In this document: piece by piece, positions 5,095-41,123 of the stretch
Layout of the letters: each line of letters starts with the position of its first letter
Position numbering within the stretch: position 1 is the first letter of the stretch
From: Lepidodermella squamata
Taxonomy: Eukaryota > Animalia > Gastrotricha
Length of the DNA stretch: 64,000 bases
Assembly (NCBI GenBank): GCA_047495785.1
Contig: JBLDXI010000024.1
Span: 1,550,001 to 1,614,000 of the forward strand
Direction of reading: 5' to 3'
Program-made: the position numbers and the translations under genes
The notes under the pieces: generated by a model
Databases searched by the model: none
What the model saw: only the letters and a program-made list of their open reading frames with translations
What the model was told of the DNA's origin: nothing

Positions 5095-7936
5095 TTAAAT
5101 GGTTAATTTTTCAAGGAATCGCAGTAGATCCTCATTTGTAATGAAACGAGGCACTTTGTACTGATTTATGACATTGCCGTTGCGTTCCAGGCAGAAGTCG
5201 CGGAACTTGATGAAGCCGCCCTTTTTAATCGTAAATACCTGTTAATAAATTAAAATTGTAAAAATTATTTTAAAATTTAAAATGAATATCTAACCTGAGG
5301 AGGAGCAACAGCTTGCCGAACTCGGTAGACATTGTAGATGGCATTTTTCTCGCAGACTTCTTTGTCAATGATATCGGCCACTTCTTGGGAAAGCTTCTCG
5401 TCATTTCCGCCGGTTGATTCGATGAAAATCACGTACCACATGTCGATACTACCCGCTAAATTTTCGAAAATTTCAGACTCATTATAGATCGAACAAAAAT
5501 AAACCTACGTTTCTTGTCCTTGATTGGAAAATATTTGGTCCAGACACTGCTAACAGTTGTGGTGAACTCGTGAAGCTGCCCAGCTCCTTTAACGCTTGAA
5601 ACAGCTTTTTTAATCGCGTTCAACATTAAATCTTCCCCAACTTTCTCGCCGACCAGGTCGAGAAGACTGCCCTGCCGCCCGCAGTACCTAATAACTGGCG
5701 TCAATCCGTGCCTCATTTGAACAATTTCGACCAAGTCTCCGATGCGATAACGGTAGAAACCAACCGCTGTCGTGATGACTAGCTCATACCTCTTCCCGAT
5801 TTGAACCTCCTCCATCAGGTAAGTCTTTGGTTGTTGTTCAGCACAGTCGCTCTCTTCGATAAACTCGTAAACGGCTGAGGTTGGTACCATAGTGAAGTAA
5901 GGCTCTTCCTTGCCGTAAGGAATGCAAAGCCCACCGAAATTAATGCCGAAAAAGCCTTCACTAGCGCCGTAAGATGGCGTGAAAATTCTGATGTTAGGCC
6001 CGCAGTAGTACTGAATTCGGTCCCGTTGAAGTTGATGGCAGCCAGAAATTGCGACATTGATAGCGCCTTGAAACAAAGTATCCCTTAAAACTAGCTATTG
6101 GTAAGTAATTTTACTCACTTAATCGAGGCCATAATCGCTCAAAAACTCCTTCGACGGAACTGGAGAAAGCTCGTTCGATCTCATCAGCCCGTTCGGGGTC
6201 TGCCTGAAACAATCCTTGAGCCATAATTTTGTCTTTAATCTCTTGAGGAATCGTTTCAGGGCCGGTGATAACGCCGCGTCTAATGTCGTCCGCCATTGAT
6301 TTCCAGTTGTTTTCAAGGACTAGAATGCCGCCGAGAACACTGCCGGGGAAAACGCCTTCAATTCTGAACAGTTCCCAATCGGCCACAGCGAATAGCCAAC
6401 GCATGTAAAACTGTGCCATATCGTCGTAGTGCTGATTCTCAACCTCAGGCGGATAGACGCGGCTAAGGTGGTACGCGTCGGTTTTCAACGATTTCGGGGG
6501 GACTGTGATGATGCTGACTGAGTGGCCGGCCTCGGTGAATTTCGCTCGAGTTTGAAGAACGATTGACATGGATTTCAGCGGTGCGAGCCAGTGCTCCTTT
6601 TTGAAGTGGTAGGCCTCGGCATAGATCGAGAAGAAAAACTTGAGGAGGCTGTTGTAGTAGTAATTGGTCGCAGGCAGGAGCTTGGGTTTTCCTTAATAAA
6701 ATGCATAGAAAAATTAATTAAAATACGAAAATAAATAAAAAAGAGTAGATAAATTAATTCTCCTATTAATTTAAAAATTAATTATTTAATTTAATTAACT
6801 AAAATCGTATGGTTCCATACAGCTTGTCCCATAAGTAACGCAAGCAAAGAAAATACACGGAAAAAGGCTCAGAAACTCTAAAATGAGAGACGAAGTCACA
6901 TCTCATGCCCAGAAAAGTTTAGAAAAATTAATAAAATCGCGAGAATAATAACCAAGTACATATGTCACTTGTTAATGGGATTAAAAAAGTCCGGAGAAGT
7001 TTGGTCCAACCGGGTAAATACCAACAATTACCGAACCAGTAACCATCCGGGTTTTCCGGGTTTTCCGGGTTTTCTCCGGTAACTTTTGTTATTACTTCGG
7101 TTAAATCGCAGATAAAAGATGGAATATTCTCTCCATAGGTTTAATTTGTTTTAGTTGAATGTCCCACAAAAAGCTGCAAAATTAAAAAGTTGCGCAACTT
7201 CTGGGACAGTACAGAGAATCCCAAGTACTTAACTTTCAGATTCTTAAGGAATTTCTAGGAGATTGTGAGGAAGTGAAACTCGATATTGGCAAAATTTAGT
7301 GCCGTAGCCCTACTTAAAGGATTCCTACTAATTCTATGTTCTATAATAACCAGTTTTATTATTCATTTCCATTTTCATTGTGGAACTATCAAATATTTTC
7401 TTACCTGTAGTTCCGGTTGAGGTATTGAAGTGGAAGACTTCGTCCGATGTGAGAAGGTTCTGTTCCCCCGTAGTACTAATTCTGTCGATATAAGGCCGGT
7501 AGGTCTCGTAGTCCGTCACTGGATGGTTCTTCTGAAAGTCCCTCCTCGATTTTATTTTGCTAAAATTATGCTCCCTGCCATACTCAGTGTTCGCATTTCT
7601 CTGCAGCAATTCTTGAAGCAGTTTTTCCTGATAAGGCGCCGGATTTTCCAGCGACGACTTCATCTTCTTCAGCGTCAAGCTTCCAGCAATGTGAAGACCT
7701 GCGTTGACCAGCGCGTGTTTGATGACGCGAAATACTGACCGGTGAAGTCGCGAGACTGGGCAGAAGGCTAACCGAGCTAGAACTAGGGCGAGGCATAACA
7801 GAGGCAGCTCGATGAGAAACGCCAAAATCTTGAATGCGAAACCACGACCGATAGTTGCTCGCCACAAAAAATCGCCGCCGATAAGAATCGAAACAGCGAT
7901 TAAAATTAGTTGAAGTGTAAATCTATTTGTTTCCAT
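5095..7936 (-). CDS. GH3-family acyl-acid amido synthetase (GHDC-like), copy a, with N-terminal hydrophobic helices
   Basis: Exons 7936-7405, 6691-6119, 6066-5509, 5455-5295 and 5238-5095. GH3 motifs LLQRNANTEYG, TSTGTTGKPKLLP, YGASEG, GFYRYRIGD and QYKVPR. Confidence 0.9.
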
Positions 7937-8165: not shown

Positions 8166-10333
8166 TTAAATTGTCCATTGGCTCAGAAATGTCAGGTGAT
8201 CTTCGCTGGTCAAAAATCGAGGCACCTTGTACTGGTTAACAACATTGTCATTTCGTTTAAGGCAGAACTCGCGAAAAGCTAGGAATCCACCTTTTTTGAT
8301 TGTGAAGACCTGAAAACATTTTGTTTGAATTATATTAATGGGACAGCTTTTCATTAGGAACTCACCTGGGGCCGGGCGACAGCTTGCCGAACTCGATAAA
8401 CGTTGTAGATGGCATTTTTCTCGCAAACTTCTTTATCGATAATGTCTGCTACCTCTTCCGGGAATTTCTCGTCCCCACCGGTAGATTCGATGAATATCAC
8501 GTACAACATATCAATACTTCCCGCTAAAATTTCAGGAATTTCAGACTTGATAGATCGAACAAGATTGAACTTACGTTTCTTGTCCTTGATTGGGAAATAT
8601 TTGGTCCAAACACTGCTAACAGTTGTGGTGAATTCGTAAAGTTGCCCAGCTCCTTTAACGCTTGAAACAGCTTTTTTAATCGCGTTCAACATTAAATCTT
8701 CCCCAACTTTCTCGCCGACCAGGTCGAGAAGACTGCCCTGCCGCCCGCAATATCTCATAACCGGCGTCTTGCCATGCAACATATCGACAATTTCCAAAAC
8801 ATCGCCGATTCGATAGCGATAGAAGCCAACCGGCGTGGTCATGACAAGTTCATATCGCTTGCCAATCTCCACCTCCTCCATGAGGCGAGTCTTAGGCTGG
8901 GCTTCTGTGCAATCTTTCTCTTCGATGAATTCGTAGACGCCGGTTAGTGGTATTAACGTGAAATAGGGTTCCTCTGTTCCGTATGGGACGCACAGTCCAC
9001 CGAAATTATACGCATAGAAACCCTCGCTAGCTCCGATAAGTTGGGTTGAGATTTTAATGTTCGGTCCACAATAGTGTTGGATGCGATCCCTTTGAAGCTG
9101 GTGACAGCCCGAGATAGCAACAACGATGTATTCTACAGAAAACGTGTTAACAGCAATGATGCAACAGTTTCATTTTCATACCCATTCTTGGCCAGAGTCG
9201 GTGAAGAACTCCCTCGGTTCCCTTCGAAAAAGCCTCCACGATCTGGTCAGCCCGTTCGGGGTCAGCCTGCAAAATGCCTTGAGACATGATTTTGTCCTTA
9301 AGCTCTTGCGGTATAGTATCAGGCCCTGTGATCACTCCATTCCTTACGTCGTTCGCAAGTTGCTGCCAGTTGTTTTCGAGGACTAAAATACCGCCCAAAA
9401 CACTACCGGGAAATACGCCTTCGATCCTGTACATATCCCGGTCCGCAACACTGAATAGCCATCGCATGTAAAACTGAGCCGAATCCTCGTAGTGATCCGC
9501 TTCAACTTCCATGGGGTAGGTTCTAACCAACTGTAAAAGTTTGCGTCTCATGCTTTTCGGGGGCACTGAGATGATACTGATCGGATGTCCAGCTTCAGTG
9601 AACTTGTCTTTAGTCTGCAAAACGATGCCCATTGTTTTGAGCGGCGAAAGCCAATGCCCCTTTCTGTAATTCATCGATTCAGCAACCGTTGCAGTTACAA
9701 GTCCGAGGAATTTTTTATAGAAATAACCAGTCGCTGGCAACAATTTAGGCTTCCCTGTAAAATACGAATTGGATTATTGAAGCTAAAATCAAATGAATGA
9801 CCTGTAGTTCCCGTTGAAGTGTTAAATTGGATGATCGGATCTGATGTCAGCAAATTGTGGTCGCCTGTTTTGGCGATTCTATCAATGTAAGGTCGATATG
9901 TTTCATAATCGGTTAAAGGATGCTTCTCCAGGAATTCCCGACGTGATTTGATGCTACTGAGGCCATGCTTCTTGCCATATTCGGTATTAGCATTCCGTTG
10001 AAGCAACTCTTGCAGTAATTTTTCTTGGTGCGGGCCAGGATTTTTGAATACTCCATGAAGCTTTCGAAGTGAATATTTACCAGCCACATGAACGGCTAAG
10101 TGAAGAAACGCGTGACCTATGACTTCGAGAAGGGACCTGTGAAGACGCGATACCGGACAAAACGCCAATCGGCCTAATAACAGGGCGGAACCCAATAACG
10201 GAAGCTCGATGATCGCTGCTACAATTTTGAACGCAAAGTGATGACCACTGGTTAACCGCCATAATGCTTCGGCCCCGAAGAGGAGCGAAACAGCGAGTAA
10301 AATTAGCTGAAAGGAAAATCTGTTCGTCTCCAT
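8166..10333 (-). CDS. GH3-family acyl-acid amido synthetase (GHDC-like), copy b
   Basis: Exons 10333-9802, 9754-9182, 9132-8575, 8523-8366 and 8309-8166. Same intron positions and motifs as copy a, except motif II reads IGASEG. Confidence 0.9.
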
Positions 10334-10690
10334 GACAAAAAATGTAGAGGGTGTGTGTGTTTGTTTCACCGGCAGTCTGAGAAGGGCAATGATAAGACGA
10401 TTATAACCCAAGTAAACAACCAAGGCGTCATATTGTGTGGTTTTCATTCGCTATCAGAGACTGATAAAACCTGCGCTTCGAGTTGGAATAGGGCTACGGA
10501 CTGGTTTATGCCATTTATTTTACACCTAATGACCTGACAGCTAAAACTGAAGAAAAAATTGTTGAGGGCCGGACTCAAAAGTAGAAAGGGAAATTTGTTT
10601 TTGTTTATATCAGCAAACCGATCTAGGCAGCTGTGTTAAAGAATCAGGTTCCTTAAAAAAGAAGTCTTAGGGCAGGAGTGTTGATACTTT

Positions 10691-13573: not shown

Positions 13574-14011
13574 ATGAACATGGTATTAGTTGCCTCACTT
13601 GCAATAATTTTCGCTATTTTTTACGAGTCTTACGCTTCAGGTATTTGTAAAAAAAAACGATTATTAGCTTAACAATAATTTTTTCATCTTTCAGTTGTAA
13701 AAAGGCAATCGGGTGGCGCCGTTTTGTTACCTGGAGTCGATCGATTTTGCACGAAAACATGTGGCCTACGAGATGGCAACTCGTTCGGCGATTCTCAGCG
13801 GCAAATCGCTGAAGTTGGCTCTTCAGCCGGTACACACGGCCGGTTTTCAATAGTCTCTATGATTGACAGCAGCCGGCGTCGGCCGCAGACTAGATCGAAG
13901 AAGTTCCGAACCAACATTGAAAATATGAGCTATTTCGCTGCTAAACGAGCCGGCAATGCCGATCTAGCTGTTTTATGCCGATTGTGCAGGTCACATGGTT
14001 TCAGCGAATAG
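13574..14011 (+). CDS. Secreted prepropeptide P1 (two Cys modules)
   Basis: Exons 13574-13640 and 13695-14011: MNMVLVASLAIIFAIFYESYAS-VVKR-QSGGAVLLPGVDRFCTKTCGLR...KR-AGNADLAVLCRLCRSHGFSE*. Confidence 0.85.
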
Positions 14012-14527
14012 ATTTCTGATCTCGACATTAAAAAAAATAATAACAAATTGTTCTTAGTTTTTCCTTGATTAGCAGACGTTGGAAATACAATAAAATTGAA
14101 GCTGGTCTTCCTGCAAAATTTGATCGAAATTTTGCCATCGCTAGGGACAGTTCACACCTGGGAATAGGGATTAAGTGAAAAAAATAGATCTTTCATTTTC
14201 CTCAGGTATAAATGTAATCCTTAGGATTAGCTTCAAGTCAAAGACTTGAGATAATCCCGCGTCTCTATTAATCAATAATCTTTGGCTTCGAAAATTTTCT
14301 CGAATCTGGAAATAGAATGCGACTCAATTTAACAAATGTATCCTGAAATGTCCGCGACGCCATGTGTTTTTTTTACAATTAAAAACTGAGGTGTTAATTC
14401 CAGATGATTAAATAAAGCATCGCGACGAGTGGGTGAGATAGACATAGGCCTGCGTAATATATACGGGAAAAAGCTCCTGATTGACGAATTTCTCGATGAT
14501 TTGTCGGCTATTTCATCGGAAAAAGCT

Positions 14528-15004
14528 ATGAGGGAAACTTCAAAAATTTCCACACTTTTTATTCTTCTGATCCTTTGCTATGACTACCACGTTTCCTGCC
14601 AAGCTATAGGTAAACAATTTCCCTATATTTTGATATTTCAAGACTGTTTTCTTCCAGCTAAAAGAGACGATGATAAATTTTTGAGATTTTGTACTACAAC
14701 CTGCGGGCTCGCTGATAAGCGGCCGAAAACCACGCCACCACCTGCATCAGGCCGGCGTTTTATTATCGGCTCTCTAACTCGAAGCGGCGATTTCAACCGA
14801 GCTAAAAATTCGAAAACGAAAAACGACGACGCAAGTAACAAAAAATCGCGGCGGCGTATTTCAGGCTCTCGAACTGTTCGAAGTGTTGAGGACGATTATT
14901 TCGGAGCAGGCGATGGGCCCTTTGTTAAAATTGCAATCGTGAAACGAGCCGCCGGTGATCTGCCACGGCTTTGTAAAATTTGTTACTCGAGCGGATTCGA
15001 ATAA
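14528..15004 (+). CDS. Secreted prepropeptide P2
   Basis: Exons 14528-14609 and 14658-15004 (48-nt in-frame intron): signal...AKR-DDDKFLRFCTTTCGLADKR...KR-AAGDLPRLCKICYSSGFE*. Confidence 0.85.
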   Translation: MRETSKISTLFILLILCYDYHVSCQAIGKQFPYILIFQDCFLPAKRDDDKFLRFCTTTCGLADKRPKTTPPPASGRRFIIGSLTRSGDFNRAKNSKTKNDDASNKKSRRRISGSRTVRSVEDDYFGAGDGPFVKIAIVKRAAGDLPRLCKICYSSGFE

Positions 15005-15251
15005 CGATTAAATCAATATATATAAACTATGTATAAGCCGATACTAATTATTTAGAGGATAGAGACGATTCCTGGGAGATTTTTTCATCTTTGTTTAAAT
15101 AAAATGTACCTAGTTACCTATAGCGCTTTTAACTCACTGATTCCATCACTACGTAGCTCATGAAATTCTGAATGGAAATAAAAAAAATCCACTGAGAATT
15201 GATAGTAGGAGTTGATAGTGTTAAAAAAATTAACGTTTCGAAATCAGAATA

Positions 15252-15636
15252 ATGAAAAATTTTCACGTTCTCAGCTGCCTCTTGTTAGTCCTTGGACTAC
15301 TTTCCTCAGTTGCTGACTCATTCGGTAATTTAATTATTTTTTATAAAATATTTGAAGTTTTTTCCTGTTTGATTTGAAGACAAAGAGATAGTCGCGGGTT
15401 TCAAGAAATTTTGCGCGTCAACATGTGGAATGTTGAAAAGTGGCATCGACCCAAGCCGAAATTCGTTGATGCAGAACAGCCGCAAGCCGGGAGGTCGGTC
15501 TTCGCTTCACCGGCACATGGACAGCAGTTTGAGGCGCGGGAAAAATTCGATTAGCAACACCAAAGTCGACAAACGAGCTCCTGATTTGACGAAACTTTGC
15601 AAATTATGCGGGGCTTATGGCTTCTCCAGCTTATAG
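15252..15636 (+). CDS. Secreted prepropeptide P3
   Basis: Exons 15252-15324 and 15380-15636: MKNFHVLSCLLLVLGLLSSVADS-FDKEIVAGFKKFCASTCGMLK...KR-APDLTKLCKLCGAYGFSSL*. Confidence 0.85.
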
Positions 15637-16002
15637 AGCAGCCAAGATTTGATTAATTTTCGCTAAAGTGCAAGCTTTTTTCACCGTTAATTTCAATCAA
15701 TTTAATTCCTGATAGTAGAAGCAGGATATCTAAACTTGTATCTTGGACACTAGGTTGTTCAAAAAAGTGCGTCATTAGATAGCCTGGAGCATGAGTGTCA
15801 CAATTTTTTGTAAATTAAAAAATGAGCAATTTCGATGAAGGAACGCGAAGCTGTAAACACCTTTTATATACGTGAGAAGAAAATCGCCTACGGAGTCTGT
15901 GTTTTAATTAAAGTTGCAAGACATATAATTTCAATAAAAGCACACTTTCAGTGACTAAAACTCGAAATTTACTCGTCCTTTCGCCGCAGTTTTAGGCTTA
16001 AG

Positions 16003-16621
16003 ATGAGGTTTGATGTTTTGGCAGTTTCGATAATTGCCGCATTGATGCCGGAAATTACAATCGAGGCCCCGTCCCACCCAGCGAAAGCTCGAGATAGTAA
16101 GTATTTCTACATTTCGACTGCAAATTTTTAGAATTTTGGTAAATTTAGGCAATAAAGCCGTTTTTCATCAATTATTTTCGAATAACGGAACGTTGAGTCA
16201 AATGTCGCGCCGGCAATTGAAGCACACGGCGGCTCGGCTTTGCGATCTCTGCCGGGCGATGAATATATATGTCCCAATAACTGCCCCACAGCACCTCAAA
16301 TCAGGCTCCGAAGCATTCGGCCACAGTCACGGTCTGCCTGAATCGGCGCCTACTATGGCAACTGGCCGCGTGAGCCTCAGCGACCGGCGAACGAGGCGAT
16401 CCCTTCAAATGCCACGCATGAGTGTTGTTTCAATGATGGGCAGTGCGTTGAGGCGGAAAAACGAAAACGACCGCGATGATTTTTACCACCCTAACGCGGC
16501 TATTTCAGCCATGGCTAATCAACCGCTGCACGGTCCTTCAGTTGCGAAAAATGGCGGAACTGCGCCGAAAAGCCTCTCGGACATGTGCGCGACTTGCGAT
16601 GTCATAAAACGCAATTTATGA
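16003..16621 (+). CDS. Secreted prepropeptide P4 (divergent, two CxxC modules)
   Basis: Exons 16003-16096 and 16149-16621. Hydrophobic N-terminus, then RR-QLKHTAARLCDLCRAMN, internal RRTRR and RRK sites, and a C-terminal APKSLSDMCATCDVIKRNL*. Confidence 0.75.
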
Positions 16622-16793
16622 ACCAATTTTTATTTTCCAAACTGCAATCAGTATATATTTATTACGTGTCCGAAATACCCGTGGTAAAGATAATTAGTCA
16701 GGAAAATCAAAATTAGCTAAACAATATTATAAAAACGCAACTTCCATCCATTAAAATATTTCAATTTTTTCTTAAATTTTTAAGGTGGATTTT

Positions 16794-35300: not shown

Positions 35301-38300
35301 TGCGTGTGGACGTGAATCTGCTGCGCGACGTGCATTGTAACTGGGAAGTCGTTTTGCATCCAAGCTCTGACTTTCAGTACAGTAGTCCGCCATGGGAAAA
35401 CGGGCGGCTCGGCTGAGACTGGTTGCTTCTTCACGGCTGTAACCCCCAGCCGGATTTGTTCTTGCGGGTCGAGCAGGATGTAGTTGAGCAGGGAGATGCG
35501 GATAGCCCGGTTGTATTCATACCTGGTTTCCGACAAAATTGCTTGCACTAATTTCGGATATTTCTCCTGGAGTTTGCCTGGGACTAGCTTGAGCAAATTG
35601 TCTATCCAATCGGCGGACAGCGGCGCGACTACGGCGGGCTCGATCGCTTTATCGACCAAATGGTAAAAGCGAGGTATGTCGCGATCGATCGGCGTATTCG
35701 GCCGGGTCATGCCTATTGTCGACGTGTACCACGGCGAGAAAGTTATGGCTAAACACGCCTGTGTCAGGTCGTTGTGCTGCGGCTCAGATTCGCGCTTCGA
35801 GTCACTCGCCGAGCGATTTCGAAGGTAAAAAGTCGGCTCGCCGTGGTGCGCAATCAACGTGTTCGATCGACTTACGTTGATAATCGGCGGCAATTTCGTA
35901 TCGTCAACCTGTTCGATTAGCCTAGTGTTCATCCGACTTTTTAAACTGAGCTTAGTTGAGAACTGAGTGGTAGTTCGGTCTTTCAGTAAGGTCGGTGCTC
36001 GTGATAATGGCCCGTTTTGCCCGGGTTTTTTAACGTAGTTGCTGTTTTTCAGCGCCGCTTTTTCTCGGCTTATAGTTCGAACGTCGAGGTCACGAGCTAA
36101 CGGCGAGTAGTTGTTGCCGATCGCGTCGCTTACACCGCGCGAGTAAGAAGCCTCTTTTACTGGGCATGACTGCGTCAAACCTCCTCGATCGAAAATTCTT
36201 GGAATATCGCTGTAGGCAGGCTGAAAGAATCATAAAACTAGGACCATTAATTTTTCTTAAATTGTTAACTCAAATTTGATGAGCTTTTTCAATTCTAAAT
36301 TCAAGGCTTTGAAAAATTGAAACTGTCGTTTTCGAATAATTTCGTTAAAGCATGATTACGTCGCGTTCTCAAAGTGACGATCAGTAACAGACCCGGCATG
36401 GCGTGTACACCGGAGTGGATTTTATTCTTTAGCACGATCCTGTTGTTTGTTACGTTTTCTTATCCCTTTTTGTTACTGCAAAAGTGCTCAAAGAATAACG
36501 AAAATGTAATTGAATGATCATACAGTTAGGTACAATGGAAAAAGTTTTCGTGAAAATGATAATCAAGTGCCACTAATCAACTCATCAAACAACCACTCGG
36601 TTTTTGAGGAGCAAGTCTTTAAGCGAGAAATAACTTAGGGCAAGACTGGTAGTGGATGATAGCAAGAGCGAGGTGAACGACGTGGCTGAATGCTGACTAG
36701 ATTGGTTTTGTAGAGTGAGAATGATCAGTATCGCGCAGAGTAACAATGACAAAGTATTTAGTGGGCCAACGACGATTCCCCCAATCTCCTGGCAGCAGCT
36801 GTTAACCATAGTTTTCAAGCCCTGTTTTACGCGATAGCCTTGATAAGAACAGAATGCTAACACTACCACGTGTAAAGCAGCGATGCTTGCCATCCAAGCA
36901 ATGGCATTCGGCGAAGAACAAACAACTTCTGATATTTCGAAATAAGTGTCCGTAACCGGGTCATAATTATTAATTCGTGGTGCGACAATCAATTCACAGG
37001 CAAATGAATCAGCGAGAAGCCAAATGATTAGGAGCAGCATGCAACCAACAGCAAAGATAAAAGTGGCTAGTAATGTTCGCTTTTGGATGCCGCCTTCAAA
37101 CTCGACCATTGGATCTTTCGCAGTATTACCGTGACTACTACCTGGGGAAACCAACATAATTGTGCGGCTTGGTTGGACGTCCACTTTCGACTTTTCCGTC
37201 GTTTTGTTTGGGCTAACTTGTCTTGCAGACTTATCAGGTGCCATAACAGTCAACATGTTCAAAGTTTTGCCGTTCTGCATGATTTTCACTCGTTTCGGGG
37301 GAGGAGGTAGTTTCCTTGCCAGGAAAAAAGCTCGGAATGAAACTACGCCAACAATGATTGACATCGAAAACACTAACAAGACAAGGCGAGCAATTGATAT
37401 GGCGAAACTGTCAATGCTGGTCTTCATTGAAAACGCAACTGCAGCCCCATTCAACACAATGCATCCAGTATACCCGGCAATCTTGATGAAAGGAGATGTG
37501 CCAAGTTCTGGTTTTCCGCGATTCTTGATGGTCACGAAAATAATTCCAAGCTGAAACAAGGTCAAGATGGCAGCTATAGTTGCAACAGCTGTTGCAACTT
37601 CAGGAGTAACCTCTCGCGTCAGCGAAACTGAAAACGCAACATCCCTCGGTGGGTTTCCGCCGTTGTTCCAAGCAGCCCAGTCCATCGGCTCGAGAGGGAA
37701 GACTTTATAGCGGCCATAGAACATGTAATTTCGACTAGTATCCACCTCAACAGAAGCGAACTTGTTGCGATACCCCATAGGATCATAGTAGGAATAGAGG
37801 ATCAAATCATTCTCGGAGTAGCCTCTCTTGCTGAAACGAAGTTGACCTCTGAGGCCTGAGATGTTGACAGTCAGTACAGATTGATTCACGACTTTCATGA
37901 CGAATTCGGGGTTCGTGTTCATGTCTCGCAACGACATGTTGTATTCGCGTTTCAATCGATTATCGGCATTATGCATGGCGTATATCCCCATCAAAGTGGC
38001 ATCATGGCAAACGTATTTCAATGATCCTGCAGTTGCGGTGCGAGGAACCTTTAGGATTTCGAACATTTTCTCTTCAAAATAGGTTGTATTGTAGCCTAGC
38101 TCGCTAACCCTGCTATCATCCATGACCTGAGTGACCGGACCGACAAACAATGAGTACTTGAGCTGCGTTCTGATTATTTCCCTGTTACACCAAGGATCCA
38201 AGATAGCATTTGGTAAAATGTTATTTGGCTCAGCAGCAAGAGAGTTTAGCATGAAGAACATGTACCGAGGCCCTGTCAACCCAGCTAGGTAGGCTTTGCA

Positions 38301-41123
38301 CTGGAATCGCCAGAGAAACGGCTCATTCGTAATATATACCACGATGACTCTTATGTCGTGATAACGAATTTCGTCGATAGCATCGTCTGTTATGTCCAAG
38401 ACAAGGTTAAAAGTTGGAACCTTAATACCACTCTGCAGCGCGTAATTGTTGACGTATGTTGCGGCAATGTAGTCGTTTGGAGCGCTGGCCAGTGTTATAA
38501 TTCCTATTTTCGACCACTTGCCAATGTCTTTGAAGAAGTGAACCATAGATATTGCGTTAAGCTCTCCATTAGACTGCACGGGGTACAAATTAGGATAGGT
38601 CACGTGATCAGCGAGAAATGGAGCAGAGCATGCGATGGCAAGTCCAACCATGTTGAAATATTTCAGCGGCTTCCCGTAGGGTTTGCAACCAATGGAGAAA
38701 AATGGCCCGAGGAATATCGGCGAGCGAATTAGACCGTCATCTGATCTGTTTTCCCACATTCGGCCGTATCTAACGAGTTCGCGGACTGGGGCGTAGCCTT
38801 GCGTGAATCCCTCTTCATCTCGATAGTCAGGCACAATGTTGTAGTCAGGCAGAACGTCACTTCTGTTGTTGGCATGATCTATCGCGATTTTCACAGCTGG
38901 CGCGCACGGTGCATGCACAATGGGGAACACTTGAAGTATAGAAATGTTGAATTTCTTTTTCTGGCAGCTAACATGCGTGGTAAATGCAAGCAGAATCAAG
39001 AAAATGTATTCCATTCGCGACATGCTTGCGAAAATGTACGTTAAAGGCAGGTTAAAAATGTTAATTAATGATTTTGCTTTTCGCAGCTTTAATGAGTTTA
39101 CCAAAAAGCATCCCACGCGAATATCGCCGCACCGGGACATGTTTTTTTAATATCATCATCTCCGCTATCGTGGAAATGTTGAAGTTACGAGGCGTTTTAT
39201 TTATAAGTATGTCTATATTTCTAAATATATTGACCAGCAATCAAGAATGCAGGGGAAGGGGTTCAATTTCCCCAGAGGAAATCCGCGCTGTAATTAGTGA
39301 TTTCAGGTAATAACTACGGAAGCTTCGATATAATTATCAAGGTGTCTTAAAATCAGGTGGCTGAAATCATCGAGCGATGATGTCGTTCTTTGCTGCTCAT
39401 CGGCCAGCTGAGATAACATTGTTTGTTTGCTGGTAAAGTCAGGAGTTTTTTCTCTGTTTCGTAAAGTTCAATCTAAGGTTCAGGATCTCAAAGGTTTATG
39501 AGCTTTCCAACTGCAAAATCATGTCTTTGCGAGCAAATTTGAAAAGGCTAAGTTATCTCAGTTTTACAGATTAGATATTATTCTTAATCCGTTTGAAATG
39601 CAGAATATTAAGGAAAACATGTCGAATATTACGTAACCGGAAAGCCGGAAAGCCGTCCGAATTCGTAGAAAATACAGGAAAAATAAAATATTTCTGTAGC
39701 GAATTTTCGAAAGCAAAAACCTGTAGCAGTAGCTGTATTTTTTGTTGCGAATAAAAAAACCCTCACAGATTTTAGGGTATTTTATTTGGATTTTTATAAT
39801 CAATCATTAAATTCTGAACAATTTTGAAATGCATTTTTGGGCGAATTAATTATTCAAAATAAGGATCCGCTAAAAGAAGGACCCCTTAAATAATTTCACT
39901 TCAATAATTTTGAATTTCGGCCCATTGAATATAAGGCCCATTTCTGATATATAAGAAATTATCCGAAGAAAACTATGGGCGGTCATTTGAAGTTCCAGCC
40001 CCCAATTTGAGGCTTCAGCACTAGATTTCTCCAAGAATGGTTGTCGAGTTCTCGATTTGCAAACGTTTGTATCATGTTAGATTGATTGATCTCACTGCTA
40101 CACGTTATCGGTGGTCAGTTTATAATTTATGCTTCAGCCTTCATAGAGCCGATATAGATTTTAATCATCGATTTTACGATTAAGCGATTTCTCCAATATT
40201 TGCAGTGCTGGAAGACAGCATTAAGAATTTTTTGCCTGAGGATGCCATTTAGATAAAATACACAATCTCAAGGTCACATGGCGTATCATTATTGAACAAG
40301 GATGGAAAAATCGAAATCGCAAAAAATAATCGCACAAATCAAGTCCACCTCAATTTTGCGATCCAGATATTTTAAACCTTTTTGGTCGTTAGAAAAACAT
40401 TTTTCACATATTAATTCGTTTTAAATGGGTAAGTTTCACATTGCAGGAGGAAAGAAACACTCTCGTTCTGTCGCAAGGTTAAACGTCCCTGGATGTTCCT
40501 AGTCCAAGTCCTAGTCCGAGCCATTTCAACTACCTAGTTAATCTAAATTCATTAGGTCGATGCCCGAGAAAACGGGTTGAACTTATGTGTACTTAGATTT
40601 CATTTGCGAATGGTATCAGTCGTTGAAATAATTAGAACAATTTATGTCACCCTTTGCTTATCAAGTCTACAACGACACTTGTCAGTTTTACTTGAAAAAC
40701 AAAATAGCTCATATAGCCCATTTTAATTGGGAAAATTGTCTTTAAATATCACGAGGTCTCAAATTTCTGGGCTATAACTAATTGAAGCTAATTTACGGAG
40801 CACAAGTTATCTAACTATAACGTACCTCATCGACGGAAAGAGGCGGTAAATGGTTGAAAATAGCAGGCCTGTGGTTAGCCTCGAAATTGTTCGGTTTCGC
40901 GATCGGAATCGACCAAGTTGTCATTTGCCGTTGCATTCGGGCAAGCTCCTACGTGATAAAAATTGGGACATTTTATCTTAAAATCAATCAACTGAAAAAC
41001 CTCATCGTCGAGATCCCGAGCGGCCAGGCCGCCGTTGTAGCGGGAAATCGTCGGCTGACCCGCGCTTTCGGTCGGGGCATTTTCAGGCAGCCGAAAGCCA
41101 ATCTCCTTCTTTCGCGCAATCAT
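20314..41123 (-). CDS. Axonemal inner-arm dynein heavy chain, DNAH3-like divergent paralogue (copy B)
   Basis: Exons 41123-41001, 40948-40826, 36220-29952, 29233-28699, 28517-27915, 27732-27637, 27295-25808, 25368-25262, 25202-24827, 24674-23039, 22424-21559, 20708-20598 and 20532-20314. AAA1 GPAGTGKTE, stalk/MTBD and C-terminal [15 protein letters not shown] are present. The 5' exons are assigned by homology to copy A. Confidence 0.88.
21170..21500. repeat. Dispersed intronic repeat family, copy 1
   Basis: AAAATTGAGGTCCCAG...TTCCAAGACTTGTAATA...AAATCGATATTTGGAATCAATATC matches 54820-55200 in the same orientation, and 25420-25745 and 27380-27560 in reverse. Confidence 0.7.
25420..25745. repeat. 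Dispersed intronic repeat family, copy 2 (inverted)
   Basis: GATATTGATTCCAAGTATCGATTT...GCTGGAACCTCAATTTT is the reverse complement of the copy 1/4 blocks. Confidence 0.65.
27380..27560. repeat. Dispersed intronic repeat family, partial copy 3 (inverted)
   Basis: AGATCTCGCTATTACGCGCATTTTG...ATATCGATTCCAATTATCGATTTTCCAAATCAGTGATTTT matches the reverse complement of about 54970-55090. Confidence 0.65.
36585..39023 (-). CDS. Class C GPCR, GABA-B-receptor-like (Venus flytrap domain plus 7TM), intronless, nested in a dynein B intron
   Basis: Single ORF with probable start MSRMEYIFLILLAFTTHVSC (signal peptide). Flytrap motifs PAVKIAIDHANNRSDVLPDY, IFLGPFFSIGC, YPNLYP and GLRGQLRF, then PPRD and seven hydrophobic segments. 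No Cys-rich domain, as in GABA-B receptors. Confidence 0.88.
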   Translation of the reverse strand: MSRMEYIFLILLAFTTHVSCQKKKFNISILQVFPIVHAPCAPAVKIAIDHANNRSDVLPDYNIVPDYRDEEGFTQGYAPVRELVRYGRMWENRSDDGLIRSPIFLGPFFSIGCKPYGKPLKYFNMVGLAIACSAPFLADHVTYPNLYPVQSNGELNAISMVHFFKDIGKWSKIGIITLASAPNDYIAATYVNNYALQSGIKVPTFNLVLDITDDAIDEIRYHDIRVIVVYITNEPFLWRFQCKAYLAGLTGPRYMFFMLNSLAAEPNNILPNAILDPWCNREIIRTQLKYSLFVGPVTQVMDDSRVSELGYNTTYFEEKMFEILKVPRTATAGSLKYVCHDATLMGIYAMHNADNRLKREYNMSLRDMNTNPEFVMKVVNQSVLTVNISGLRGQLRFSKRGYSENDLILYSYYDPMGYRNKFASVEVDTSRNYMFYGRYKVFPLEPMDWAAWNNGGNPPRDVAFSVSLTREVTPEVATAVATIAAILTLFQLGIIFVTIKNRGKPELGTSPFIKIAGYTGCIVLNGAAVAFSMKTSIDSFAISIARLVLLVFSMSIIVGVVSFRAFFLARKLPPPPKRVKIMQNGKTLNMLTVMAPDKSARQVSPNKTTEKSKVDVQPSRTIMLVSPGSSHGNTAKDPMVEFEGGIQKRTLLATFIFAVGCMLLLIIWLLADSFACELIVAPRINNYDPVTDTYFEISEVVCSSPNAIAWMASIAALHVVVLAFCSYQGYRVKQGLKTMVNSCCQEIGGIVVGPLNTLSLLLCAILIILTLQNQSSQHSATSFTSLLLSSTTSLALSYFSLKDLLLKNRVVV

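Follow-up and report, generated by a model that had tools for sequence, protein, structure and literature searches.

A tandem family of four expressed four-cysteine proteins, candidate processed proproteins, in the gastrotrich Lepidodermella squamata

Known precursors and the four-gene locus

Most known signaling peptides that consist of two disulfide-linked chains released from a single precursor belong to the insulin/relaxin superfamily, whose framework comprises six cysteines, arranged as C-x10-12-C in the B chain and CC-x3-C-x8-C in the A chain. Here we describe a locus in the genome of the gastrotrich Lepidodermella squamata (assembly of 121 Mb in 151 contigs, 43% G+C) that encodes small proteins of comparable layout with a different cysteine code. 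The DNA analyzed, called the window below, is a stretch of 64,000 nucleotides (contig C24, positions 1550001 to 1614000). The genes in question, P1 to P4, are four co-oriented two-exon genes on its plus strand (window positions 13574 to 16621), spaced 250 to 520 bases apart. We found that P1 to P4 are expressed, spliced genes under purifying selection, the splice of P3 being a prediction. Their sequences and structural models suggest lineage-restricted exported proproteins in which two helices would be cross-linked by two disulfides and the linker between them trimmed by convertases, a reading to which we assign a probability of roughly 40%.

Like the precursors of insulin and relaxin, the P1 to P4 proteins have a putative signal peptide, predicted helical segments with Cys at both ends of the proprotein, a connector rich in basic residues, and, in P1 to P3, KR directly before the C-terminal segment, and the outcome proposed for them is also two chains with two interchain disulfides. 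In contrast to those precursors, the mature parts of P1 to P4 and of the one relative returned by our searches (P0001, from a metagenome scaffold) contain exactly four Cys each. These are spaced Cx3C ... Cx2C in P1 to P3 and P0001 and Cx2C ... Cx2C in P4, so that no insulin-type intrachain bridge is possible. There was no match to an insulin-type Pfam family at E values up to 10, no dibasic site is conserved after the first segment, P4 has no second cleavage site, and the connector carries a conserved motif of its own. Because the Cys framework and the profile match both fail, P1 to P4 are placed by these measures outside the insulin/relaxin superfamily, which serves as a working analogy only.

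Other mini-proteins are built as a cystine-stabilized helix-loop-helix, among them the scorpion CS-alpha/alpha toxins of the kappa-hefutoxin type. In the plant alpha-hairpinins, which are cut from precursors with signal peptides, four Cys in two pairs, each pair on one face of a short helix, form two disulfides that brace two antiparallel helices; these peptides are defined by the motif Cx3C-Xn-Cx3C, in which the loop is short (PMC7191063). P1 to P4 likewise have four Cys in two pairs, and P1 to P3 and P0001 have the Cx3C element. In contrast, none of the five proteins has Cx3C as its second element, which is Cx2C throughout, and P4 has Cx2C in the first position too, so that the defining motif is absent. 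The "loop" of P1 to P4 is 57 to 111 residues long, basic, predicted to be disordered, and apparently cuttable. Furthermore, there is no sequence similarity between these animal proteins and the plant peptides, and the fold matches are to generic hairpins, with Z scores of at most 2.7.

The precursors of bilaterian neuropeptides offer a third comparison. P1 to P4 resemble them in being small and apparently secreted, with conserved segments bounded by KR, RR, or RRR, KR followed by a small residue, basic sites with Gln behind or Gly in front of them, and convertase genes in the genome. They differ in that they fit no assigned family and that the conserved segments hold unpaired-looking Cys pairs instead of one ring or an amidated linear peptide. 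Three features of a convertase-processed prohormone, a class defined by function and not by homology, are present (hydrophobic signal core, conserved basic sites, and genes with a convertase P domain).

Gene structure, transcripts, and sequence variants

P1 to P4 share one architecture, in which an ATG opens a hydrophobic exon 1 of 22 to 31 codons that ends one base into a codon, an intron of 48 to 55 nt follows, and exon 2 continues until the stop codon. The introns of all four genes are GT..AG and in phase 1. Signal peptides were called from the Kyte-Doolittle hydrophobicity of exon 1, which has a hydrophobic core in each gene (best 9-residue mean, 2.9 to 3.2). Searches, folds, and alignments took exon 2 as the query, and exon 1 was analyzed separately. 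An earlier interpretation made from the letters of the window (the sequence-only reading) had claimed a signal exon and a phase-1 intron for P1 to P3; both can be read from the sequence there and in P4 as well.

Two public sequencing runs cover the genes. The first (X1, 2015) is cDNA, as its contigs end loosely in poly(A); their other loose ends are presumably a SMART-type cDNA adapter. The second (X2, 2024) is DNA that covers the whole region and has many differences from the window, some of which X1 shares. The features are listed here in window coordinates, with helices as predicted by AlphaFold2.

13574-13640, plus strand: P1 exon 1, start codon and putative signal peptide, 22 codons plus 1 base; an X1 cDNA contig lies over its 3' part, joined to exon 2
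13641-13694, plus strand: P1 intron, 54 nt, GT..AG; the X1 joint 13635>13690 (cut +5) skips 54 nt
13695-14011, plus strand: P1 exon 2, a stop behind 104 in-frame codons; the four Cys are residues 18, 22, 94, and 97; both listed variants are synonymous
13745-13768, plus strand: P1 module 1, FCTKTCGL (Cx3C), predicted helix at residues 12-21
13838-13882, plus strand: P1 middle motif, G-R-F-S-I-V-S-M-I-D-S-S-R-R-R, the best-conserved stretch across the two species
13943-14008, plus strand: P1 module 2, KR followed by A..DL..LCRLC...GF up to the C terminus (Cx2C), predicted helix at residues 87-99
14528-14609, plus strand: P2 exon 1, start codon and putative signal peptide, 27 codons plus 1 base; an X1 contig crosses the junction
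14610-14657, plus strand: P2 intron, 48 nt, GT..AG; X1 joint 14607>14656 (cut +2); three 1-nt X2 indels inside
14658-15004, plus strand: P2 exon 2, 114 in-frame codons plus stop; listed variants are 3 synonymous and 1 nonsynonymous
14687-14710, plus strand: P2 module 1
14942-15001, plus strand: P2 module 2 with its KR
15252-15324, plus strand: P3 exon 1, start codon and putative signal peptide, 24 codons plus 1 base; a prediction only, with no X1 contig there
15325-15379, plus strand: P3 intron, 55 nt, GT..AG, predicted from splice signals and phase; four X2 substitutions and a 7-nt X2 deletion inside
15380-15636, plus strand: P3 exon 2, 84 in-frame codons plus stop; X1 contigs present; predicted helices at residues 2-13 and 69-78
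15409-15432, plus strand: P3 module 1
15493-15537, plus strand: P3 middle motif
15571-15633, plus strand: P3 module 2 with its KR
16003-16096, plus strand: P4 exon 1, start codon and putative signal peptide, 31 codons plus 1 base; a 591-nt X1 contig lies over 15990-16096, joined to exon 2
16097-16148, plus strand: P4 intron, 52 nt, GT..AG; X1 joint 16096>16149, its shorter side 107 letters long; one 2-nt X2 insertion inside
16149-16621, plus strand: P4 exon 2, the divergent member, 156 in-frame codons plus stop; listed variants are 8 synonymous and 3 nonsynonymous
16208-16216, plus strand: P4 RR-Q
16235-16252, plus strand: P4 first CxxC module
16412-16459, plus strand: P4 middle motif
16571-16618, plus strand: P4 second CxxC module
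16622-16690, plus strand: P4 3' untranslated region to the poly(A) addition site; an X1 contig has a loose end of 21 A behind 16690

The X1 contigs skip precisely 13641-13694 in P1, 14610-14657 in P2, and 16097-16148 in P4. Spliced cDNA therefore exists for these three genes with exact junctions, and the claim that the genes are split by introns was borne out for them. The 591-nt contig of P4 spans 15990 to 16609, and poly(A) begins after 16690. RNA from P3 was found on exon 2 only, with no contig over its junction; its splice is predicted from the GT..AG ends, the phase, and a pile-up of variants together with a 7-nt indel within the proposed intron. Joints in X1 contigs reported as lying on opposite strands were taken as assembly artifacts. 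Neither the nematode SL1 leader nor a rotifer spliced leader (with an unreliable query sequence) was found in the genome.

Among the listed sequence differences, which are a subset with 67 further differences outside it, exon 2 of P1 to P4 carries 14 synonymous and 4 nonsynonymous variants. Listed indels whose length is not divisible by three all lie in the introns of P2, P3, and P4 or between genes, and the sole listed coding indel is a net gain of 3 nt in the P2 signal peptide. The X1 junctions and poly(A), the synonymous excess, and the lack of a frameshift among the listed coding indels are the basis on which we conclude that these are expressed, spliced genes under purifying selection.

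Over part of P4 exon 2 (16177 to 16387), X2 has two contigs, each at about half depth (47.5 and 56.8). The first matches the window exactly and the second has 11 differences, which X1 shares; this indicates two well-separated alleles or haplotypes.

Conserved segments, relatives, and predicted structure

The proteins are organized around two Cys modules, with the last Cys 6 to 8 residues before the C terminus in all five. In P1 to P3, module 1 lies near the N terminus and reads R/K-F-C-x3-C-G-(L/M), while module 2 is C-terminal and reads KR-A-x(1-3)-D-L-x2-L-C-(K/R)-(L/I)-C-x3-G-F. Both had been described in the sequence-only reading as FC(T/A)xTCG(L/M) and KR-A..DL..LC(K/R)(L/I)C...GF, and these strings were found in P1 to P3 only across the six frames of the window and in the 121-Mb genome. 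The linker between Cys 2 and Cys 3 (57 to 111 residues) had been called hypervariable and basic. It is indeed basic, with many KR, RR, RRR, and KK pairs or triplets, and rich in Ser, Thr, Gly, Asn, and Pro, but it is not uniformly hypervariable, since a middle motif of the type G-R-F-S-I-V-S-M-I-D-S-S-R-R-R is recognizable within it in all members. The mature parts have a net charge of +10 to +13, and Ser, Thr, Gly, Asn, and Pro together make up 33 to 37% of their residues.

Several basic sites are conserved. RR or RRR stands behind the middle motif in all five proteins, and KR-(A/S) before module 2 is invariant in four of the five (P1 to P3 and P0001). The residues that flank this KR vary, as does its distance to the Cys (7 to 10 residues), and no other observation argues as strongly for selection on the site itself as the invariance of KR amid changing neighbors and spacing. 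Ahead of the first module, the Gln after a dibasic site that had been noted in P1 and P4 can be read in both (KR-Q and RR-Q), and P0001 has ER-Q; a Gln in this position is a candidate for conversion to pyroglutamate. Upstream of the middle motif, Gly directly precedes a basic site in P1 (HGR), P2 (SGRR), and P3 (GGR). From what is known of amidating enzymes, such a Gly is a possible amidation signal.

P4 is a divergent version with two CxxC modules, as had been proposed, with R-L-C-x2-C and M-C-x2-C in place of modules 1 and 2. The first of these more closely resembles module 2 of the family. In a profile comparison of P4, hhalign gave a P value of 0.012 for an alignment that covers the middle motif only. 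The kinship of P4 with P1 to P3 is thus weak by sequence alone and rests on tandem position, identical gene structure, and the order of elements.

An hmmscan of the four exon-2 proteins against all of Pfam-A at E values up to 10 returned no family, and a PDB profile search at E values up to 10 returned no match. In the ESM Atlas, the feature search reached no score above 0.75, a noise-level value, and the fold search gave only unrelated bacterial proteins at template modeling (TM) scores of at most 0.38. VIA-align against 48,161 chains found generic helical hairpins only (Z of at most 2.7). A profile run exhaustively against 1.84 billion representative proteins produced a single match, P0001 (E = 4e-9), and a word-indexed search of 5.8 billion proteins with P1 exon 2, profile A4, and P4 exon 2 produced nothing beyond it. 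Scans of JGI metagenome contigs showed no relative, the module strings were not found in the literature searched, and no further copy turned up in the L. squamata genome with the full-length profile, the module-2 profile, P4, or P0001 as the query. The sequence-only reading had not recognized the Cys pattern and had suspected a new family; no known family in Pfam, PDB, the Atlas, or the protein profile searches gave a match, let alone a strong one. P1 to P4 are, as far as these databases reach, a new lineage-restricted family without known relatives except P0001, and the kind of precursor is one already known.

Some weak matches were rejected. Two loci in the L. squamata genome, L004 (E = 1.9) and L016 (E = 6.3), were among them, and the L004 frame has no family features. 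A match of P0001 to Pfam GPR15L (E = 5.6e-4) was below the cutoff and limited to the signal-peptide end.

P0001 is encoded by an intronless open reading frame (ORF; positions 9026-9406) on L005, a 23.6-kb ENA metagenome scaffold. It keeps L-C-x3-C-G-L-R-D, KR-S, and I-C-K-I-C-x-x-H-G-F, and its middle motif is preserved nearly letter for letter. P0001 scored 72 bits against P1, whereas P1 scored 31 to 38 bits against P2 and P3. Since P0001 is closer to P1 than P1 is to its paralogs, these scores make it the P1 ortholog, and the paralogs predate the split of the two species and have been kept since. Judged by its other genes, the scaffold derives from a related animal. An EF-hand gene and a Ribosomal_S7-family gene on L005 are 58% and 69% identical, respectively, to two genes of the L. 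squamata genome, and the pair is adjacent and divergent both in L005 (14414-17553) and in L. squamata (C24:5252549-5255483), where it lies 3.7 Mb away from the window.

Three further differences or details concern P0001. The P1 ortholog lies about 5 kb from the EF-hand/Ribosomal_S7 pair in L005 versus 3.7 Mb, on the same contig, in L. squamata, and this change in spacing suggests that an intrachromosomal rearrangement took place. Where P1 to P4 have their phase-1 intron, P0001 is uninterrupted; an intron was gained or lost at the signal/mature boundary between the two related species. The ORF as called starts at GTG, and the likely eukaryotic start is an ATG six codons later.

Structures were predicted with AlphaFold2 from P3 exon 2 (3-row alignment) and P1 exon 2 (4-row alignment). 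Both models have the same layout. A helix runs through each Cys module (block-mean predicted local distance difference test [pLDDT] of about 70 to 80), in keeping with the earlier proposal that both modules are helical. A bridge segment of two or three residues lies just behind module 1, and a second lies at the C-terminal G-F. There are no other bridge segments, and the stretch between the modules is of low confidence and disordered. Because each model contains only two bridge segments, they probably pair with each other and bring the modules into contact, which is a hint only at a mean pLDDT of 57 to 61. A two-chain prediction with P1 residues 4-35 and 72-104 gave a score of 0.03, which is evidence neither for nor against binding.

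Proposed processing, alternatives, and neighboring genes

Cys at positions i,i+4 and i,i+3 fall on one face of a helix, as in Cx3C...Cx3C helical hairpins (PMC7191063). For P1 to P4 we infer export, the pairing of the helices, the topology of the disulfides, cleavage, and a function along the following lines. The signal peptide would be removed, and two short amphipathic Cys-bearing helices would pack together, with two disulfides between the Cx3C module near the N terminus and the Cx2C module about seven residues from the C terminus. Convertases of the subtilisin/kexin type would then cut the linker at the RR or RRR behind the middle motif and at the KR that precedes module 2. A KR with Ala or Ser behind it and no Arg at the P4 subsite of the cleavage site is a neuroendocrine PC1/PC2-type site and not a furin-type site. 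The genome contains at least 10 loci above the Pfam cutoff for the convertase P domain (PF01483, P_proprotein), so convertases are available in the organism. For P1 to P3, the outcome would be a two-chain disulfide-bridged peptide, perhaps together with another short peptide derived from the middle motif, and amidation of the N-terminal chain at the Gly before the basic site is conceivable. The likeliest role would be extracellular signaling, as a hormone, neuropeptide, or pheromone.

If this is true, P1 to P4 would be an unrelated second solution with a simpler Cys code, and hence a clean case of convergent prohormone design, as well as an additional peptide system in an invertebrate lineage that has received little study. 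With four genes and one ortholog the family is small, and chains of the proposed length could be made by chemical synthesis. In its fullest form, an independently evolved two-chain hormone family with a minimal Cys code (Cx3C / Cx2C) whose linker also supplies a third, linear peptide, the proposal is speculative, and the odds are well against it. If the proteins are uncut, the result is more modest, namely, another lineage-specific family of secreted mini-proteins.

Several observations weigh against a processed two-chain proprotein. No dibasic site is conserved directly after module 1 in P1 to P3 and P0001, so that it is undefined where chain 1 would end. In P4, the second module is not preceded by a dibasic site. 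The best-conserved stretch between the two species is the middle motif, which lies within the supposedly discardable linker. The overall confidence of the AlphaFold2 models is low, as given by the mean pLDDT above, and the strong net basicity also fits uncut defense or binding proteins. The insulin-style B-C-A scheme of the sequence-only reading is supported by the KR conserved before module 2 in P1 to P3 and P0001, and P4, the end of module 1, and the conserved core of the linker speak against its simple form.

Were the proteins left uncut, or trimmed at the ends only, they would be single-chain secreted mini-proteins in which a long basic disordered loop joins the arms of a disulfide-stapled helical hairpin. 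They would act in defense (as antimicrobials), adhesion, matrix binding, or another extracellular role, and the basic pairs would be a by-product of a Lys/Arg-rich loop. The charge and composition of the mature parts, the conserved middle of the loop, the lack of KR before the second module of P4, and the location of the tandem array among other clustered genes for small secreted proteins with Cys are all consistent with this explanation. It is harder to reconcile with a KR-(A/S) that is invariant in P1 to P3 and P0001 while its neighbors vary, with the RR or RRR kept behind the middle motif in five of five proteins, or with KR-Q, RR-Q, and ER-Q before module 1 in P1, P4, and P0001. Moreover, there are four copies only and no expansion, unlike typical defense families. 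We consider this explanation doubtful, and it is nonetheless the strongest competitor of the two-chain proprotein. Three separately conserved segments with basic sites as their borders, a middle motif that is conserved best across species, and the Gly before the basic site upstream of that motif in P1 to P3 would also suit a multipeptide precursor. Its pieces would be independent of each other: an N-terminal Cx3C ring peptide, a linear middle peptide of the F-S-I-V-S-M-I-D-S-S type, and a C-terminal 20-residue Cx2C ring peptide, with no interchain bridges. Small CxxC rings, however, are typical of redox-active sites and not of stable secreted peptides. In both AlphaFold2 models each Cys pair lies within a helix, and the only two bridge segments, after modules 1 and 2, suggest contact between the modules. 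In addition, when two Cys (i,i+3 or i,i+4) of a secreted mini-protein share one face of a helix, their bridges usually lead to a partner element, as in Cx3C...Cx3C hairpins (PMC7191063). Independent peptides are therefore unlikely in our estimation.

A last explanation is that there is no real protein family here and that the genes are chance ORFs, pseudogenes, or noncoding transcripts. The lack of homologs in Pfam, PDB, and JGI metagenomes and the lack of RNA support for P3 exon 1 could be read in this way. Exact splice junctions and a poly(A) tail already contradict it for P1, P2, and P4, the listed exon-2 variants (14 synonymous versus 4, with no coding frameshift) argue against it, and P0001 is an intact-ORF ortholog in another species. 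We regard it as hardly credible.

Other genes in the window include a second, unrelated family of two-exon genes for secreted proteins, which lies just downstream on the opposite strand and is convergent with P4 (16794-17369 and 18623-19064, both minus strand). The end of each protein is formed by a compact domain with four Cys, F-C-R-R-I-N-V-(Q/H)-C ... C-x6-C, and neither protein has a Pfam match. On the other side of P1 to P4, 3848-4357 and 10691-11437 (both minus strand) encode paralogous, very acidic, Cys-bearing proteins without a Pfam family. Between these acidic paralogs are tandem genes of the GH3 family (amido-synthetase type; 5456-7936 and 8354-10447, minus strand), whose N-terminal and middle domains were confirmed by Pfam. 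An intronless gene at 36585-39140 (minus strand) encodes a class C G protein-coupled receptor of 851 residues, for which the nearest ESM Atlas clusters (score, 0.96 to 0.97) are mainly diatom and not animal. This diatom-like receptor may reflect gene transfer or only sparse sampling.

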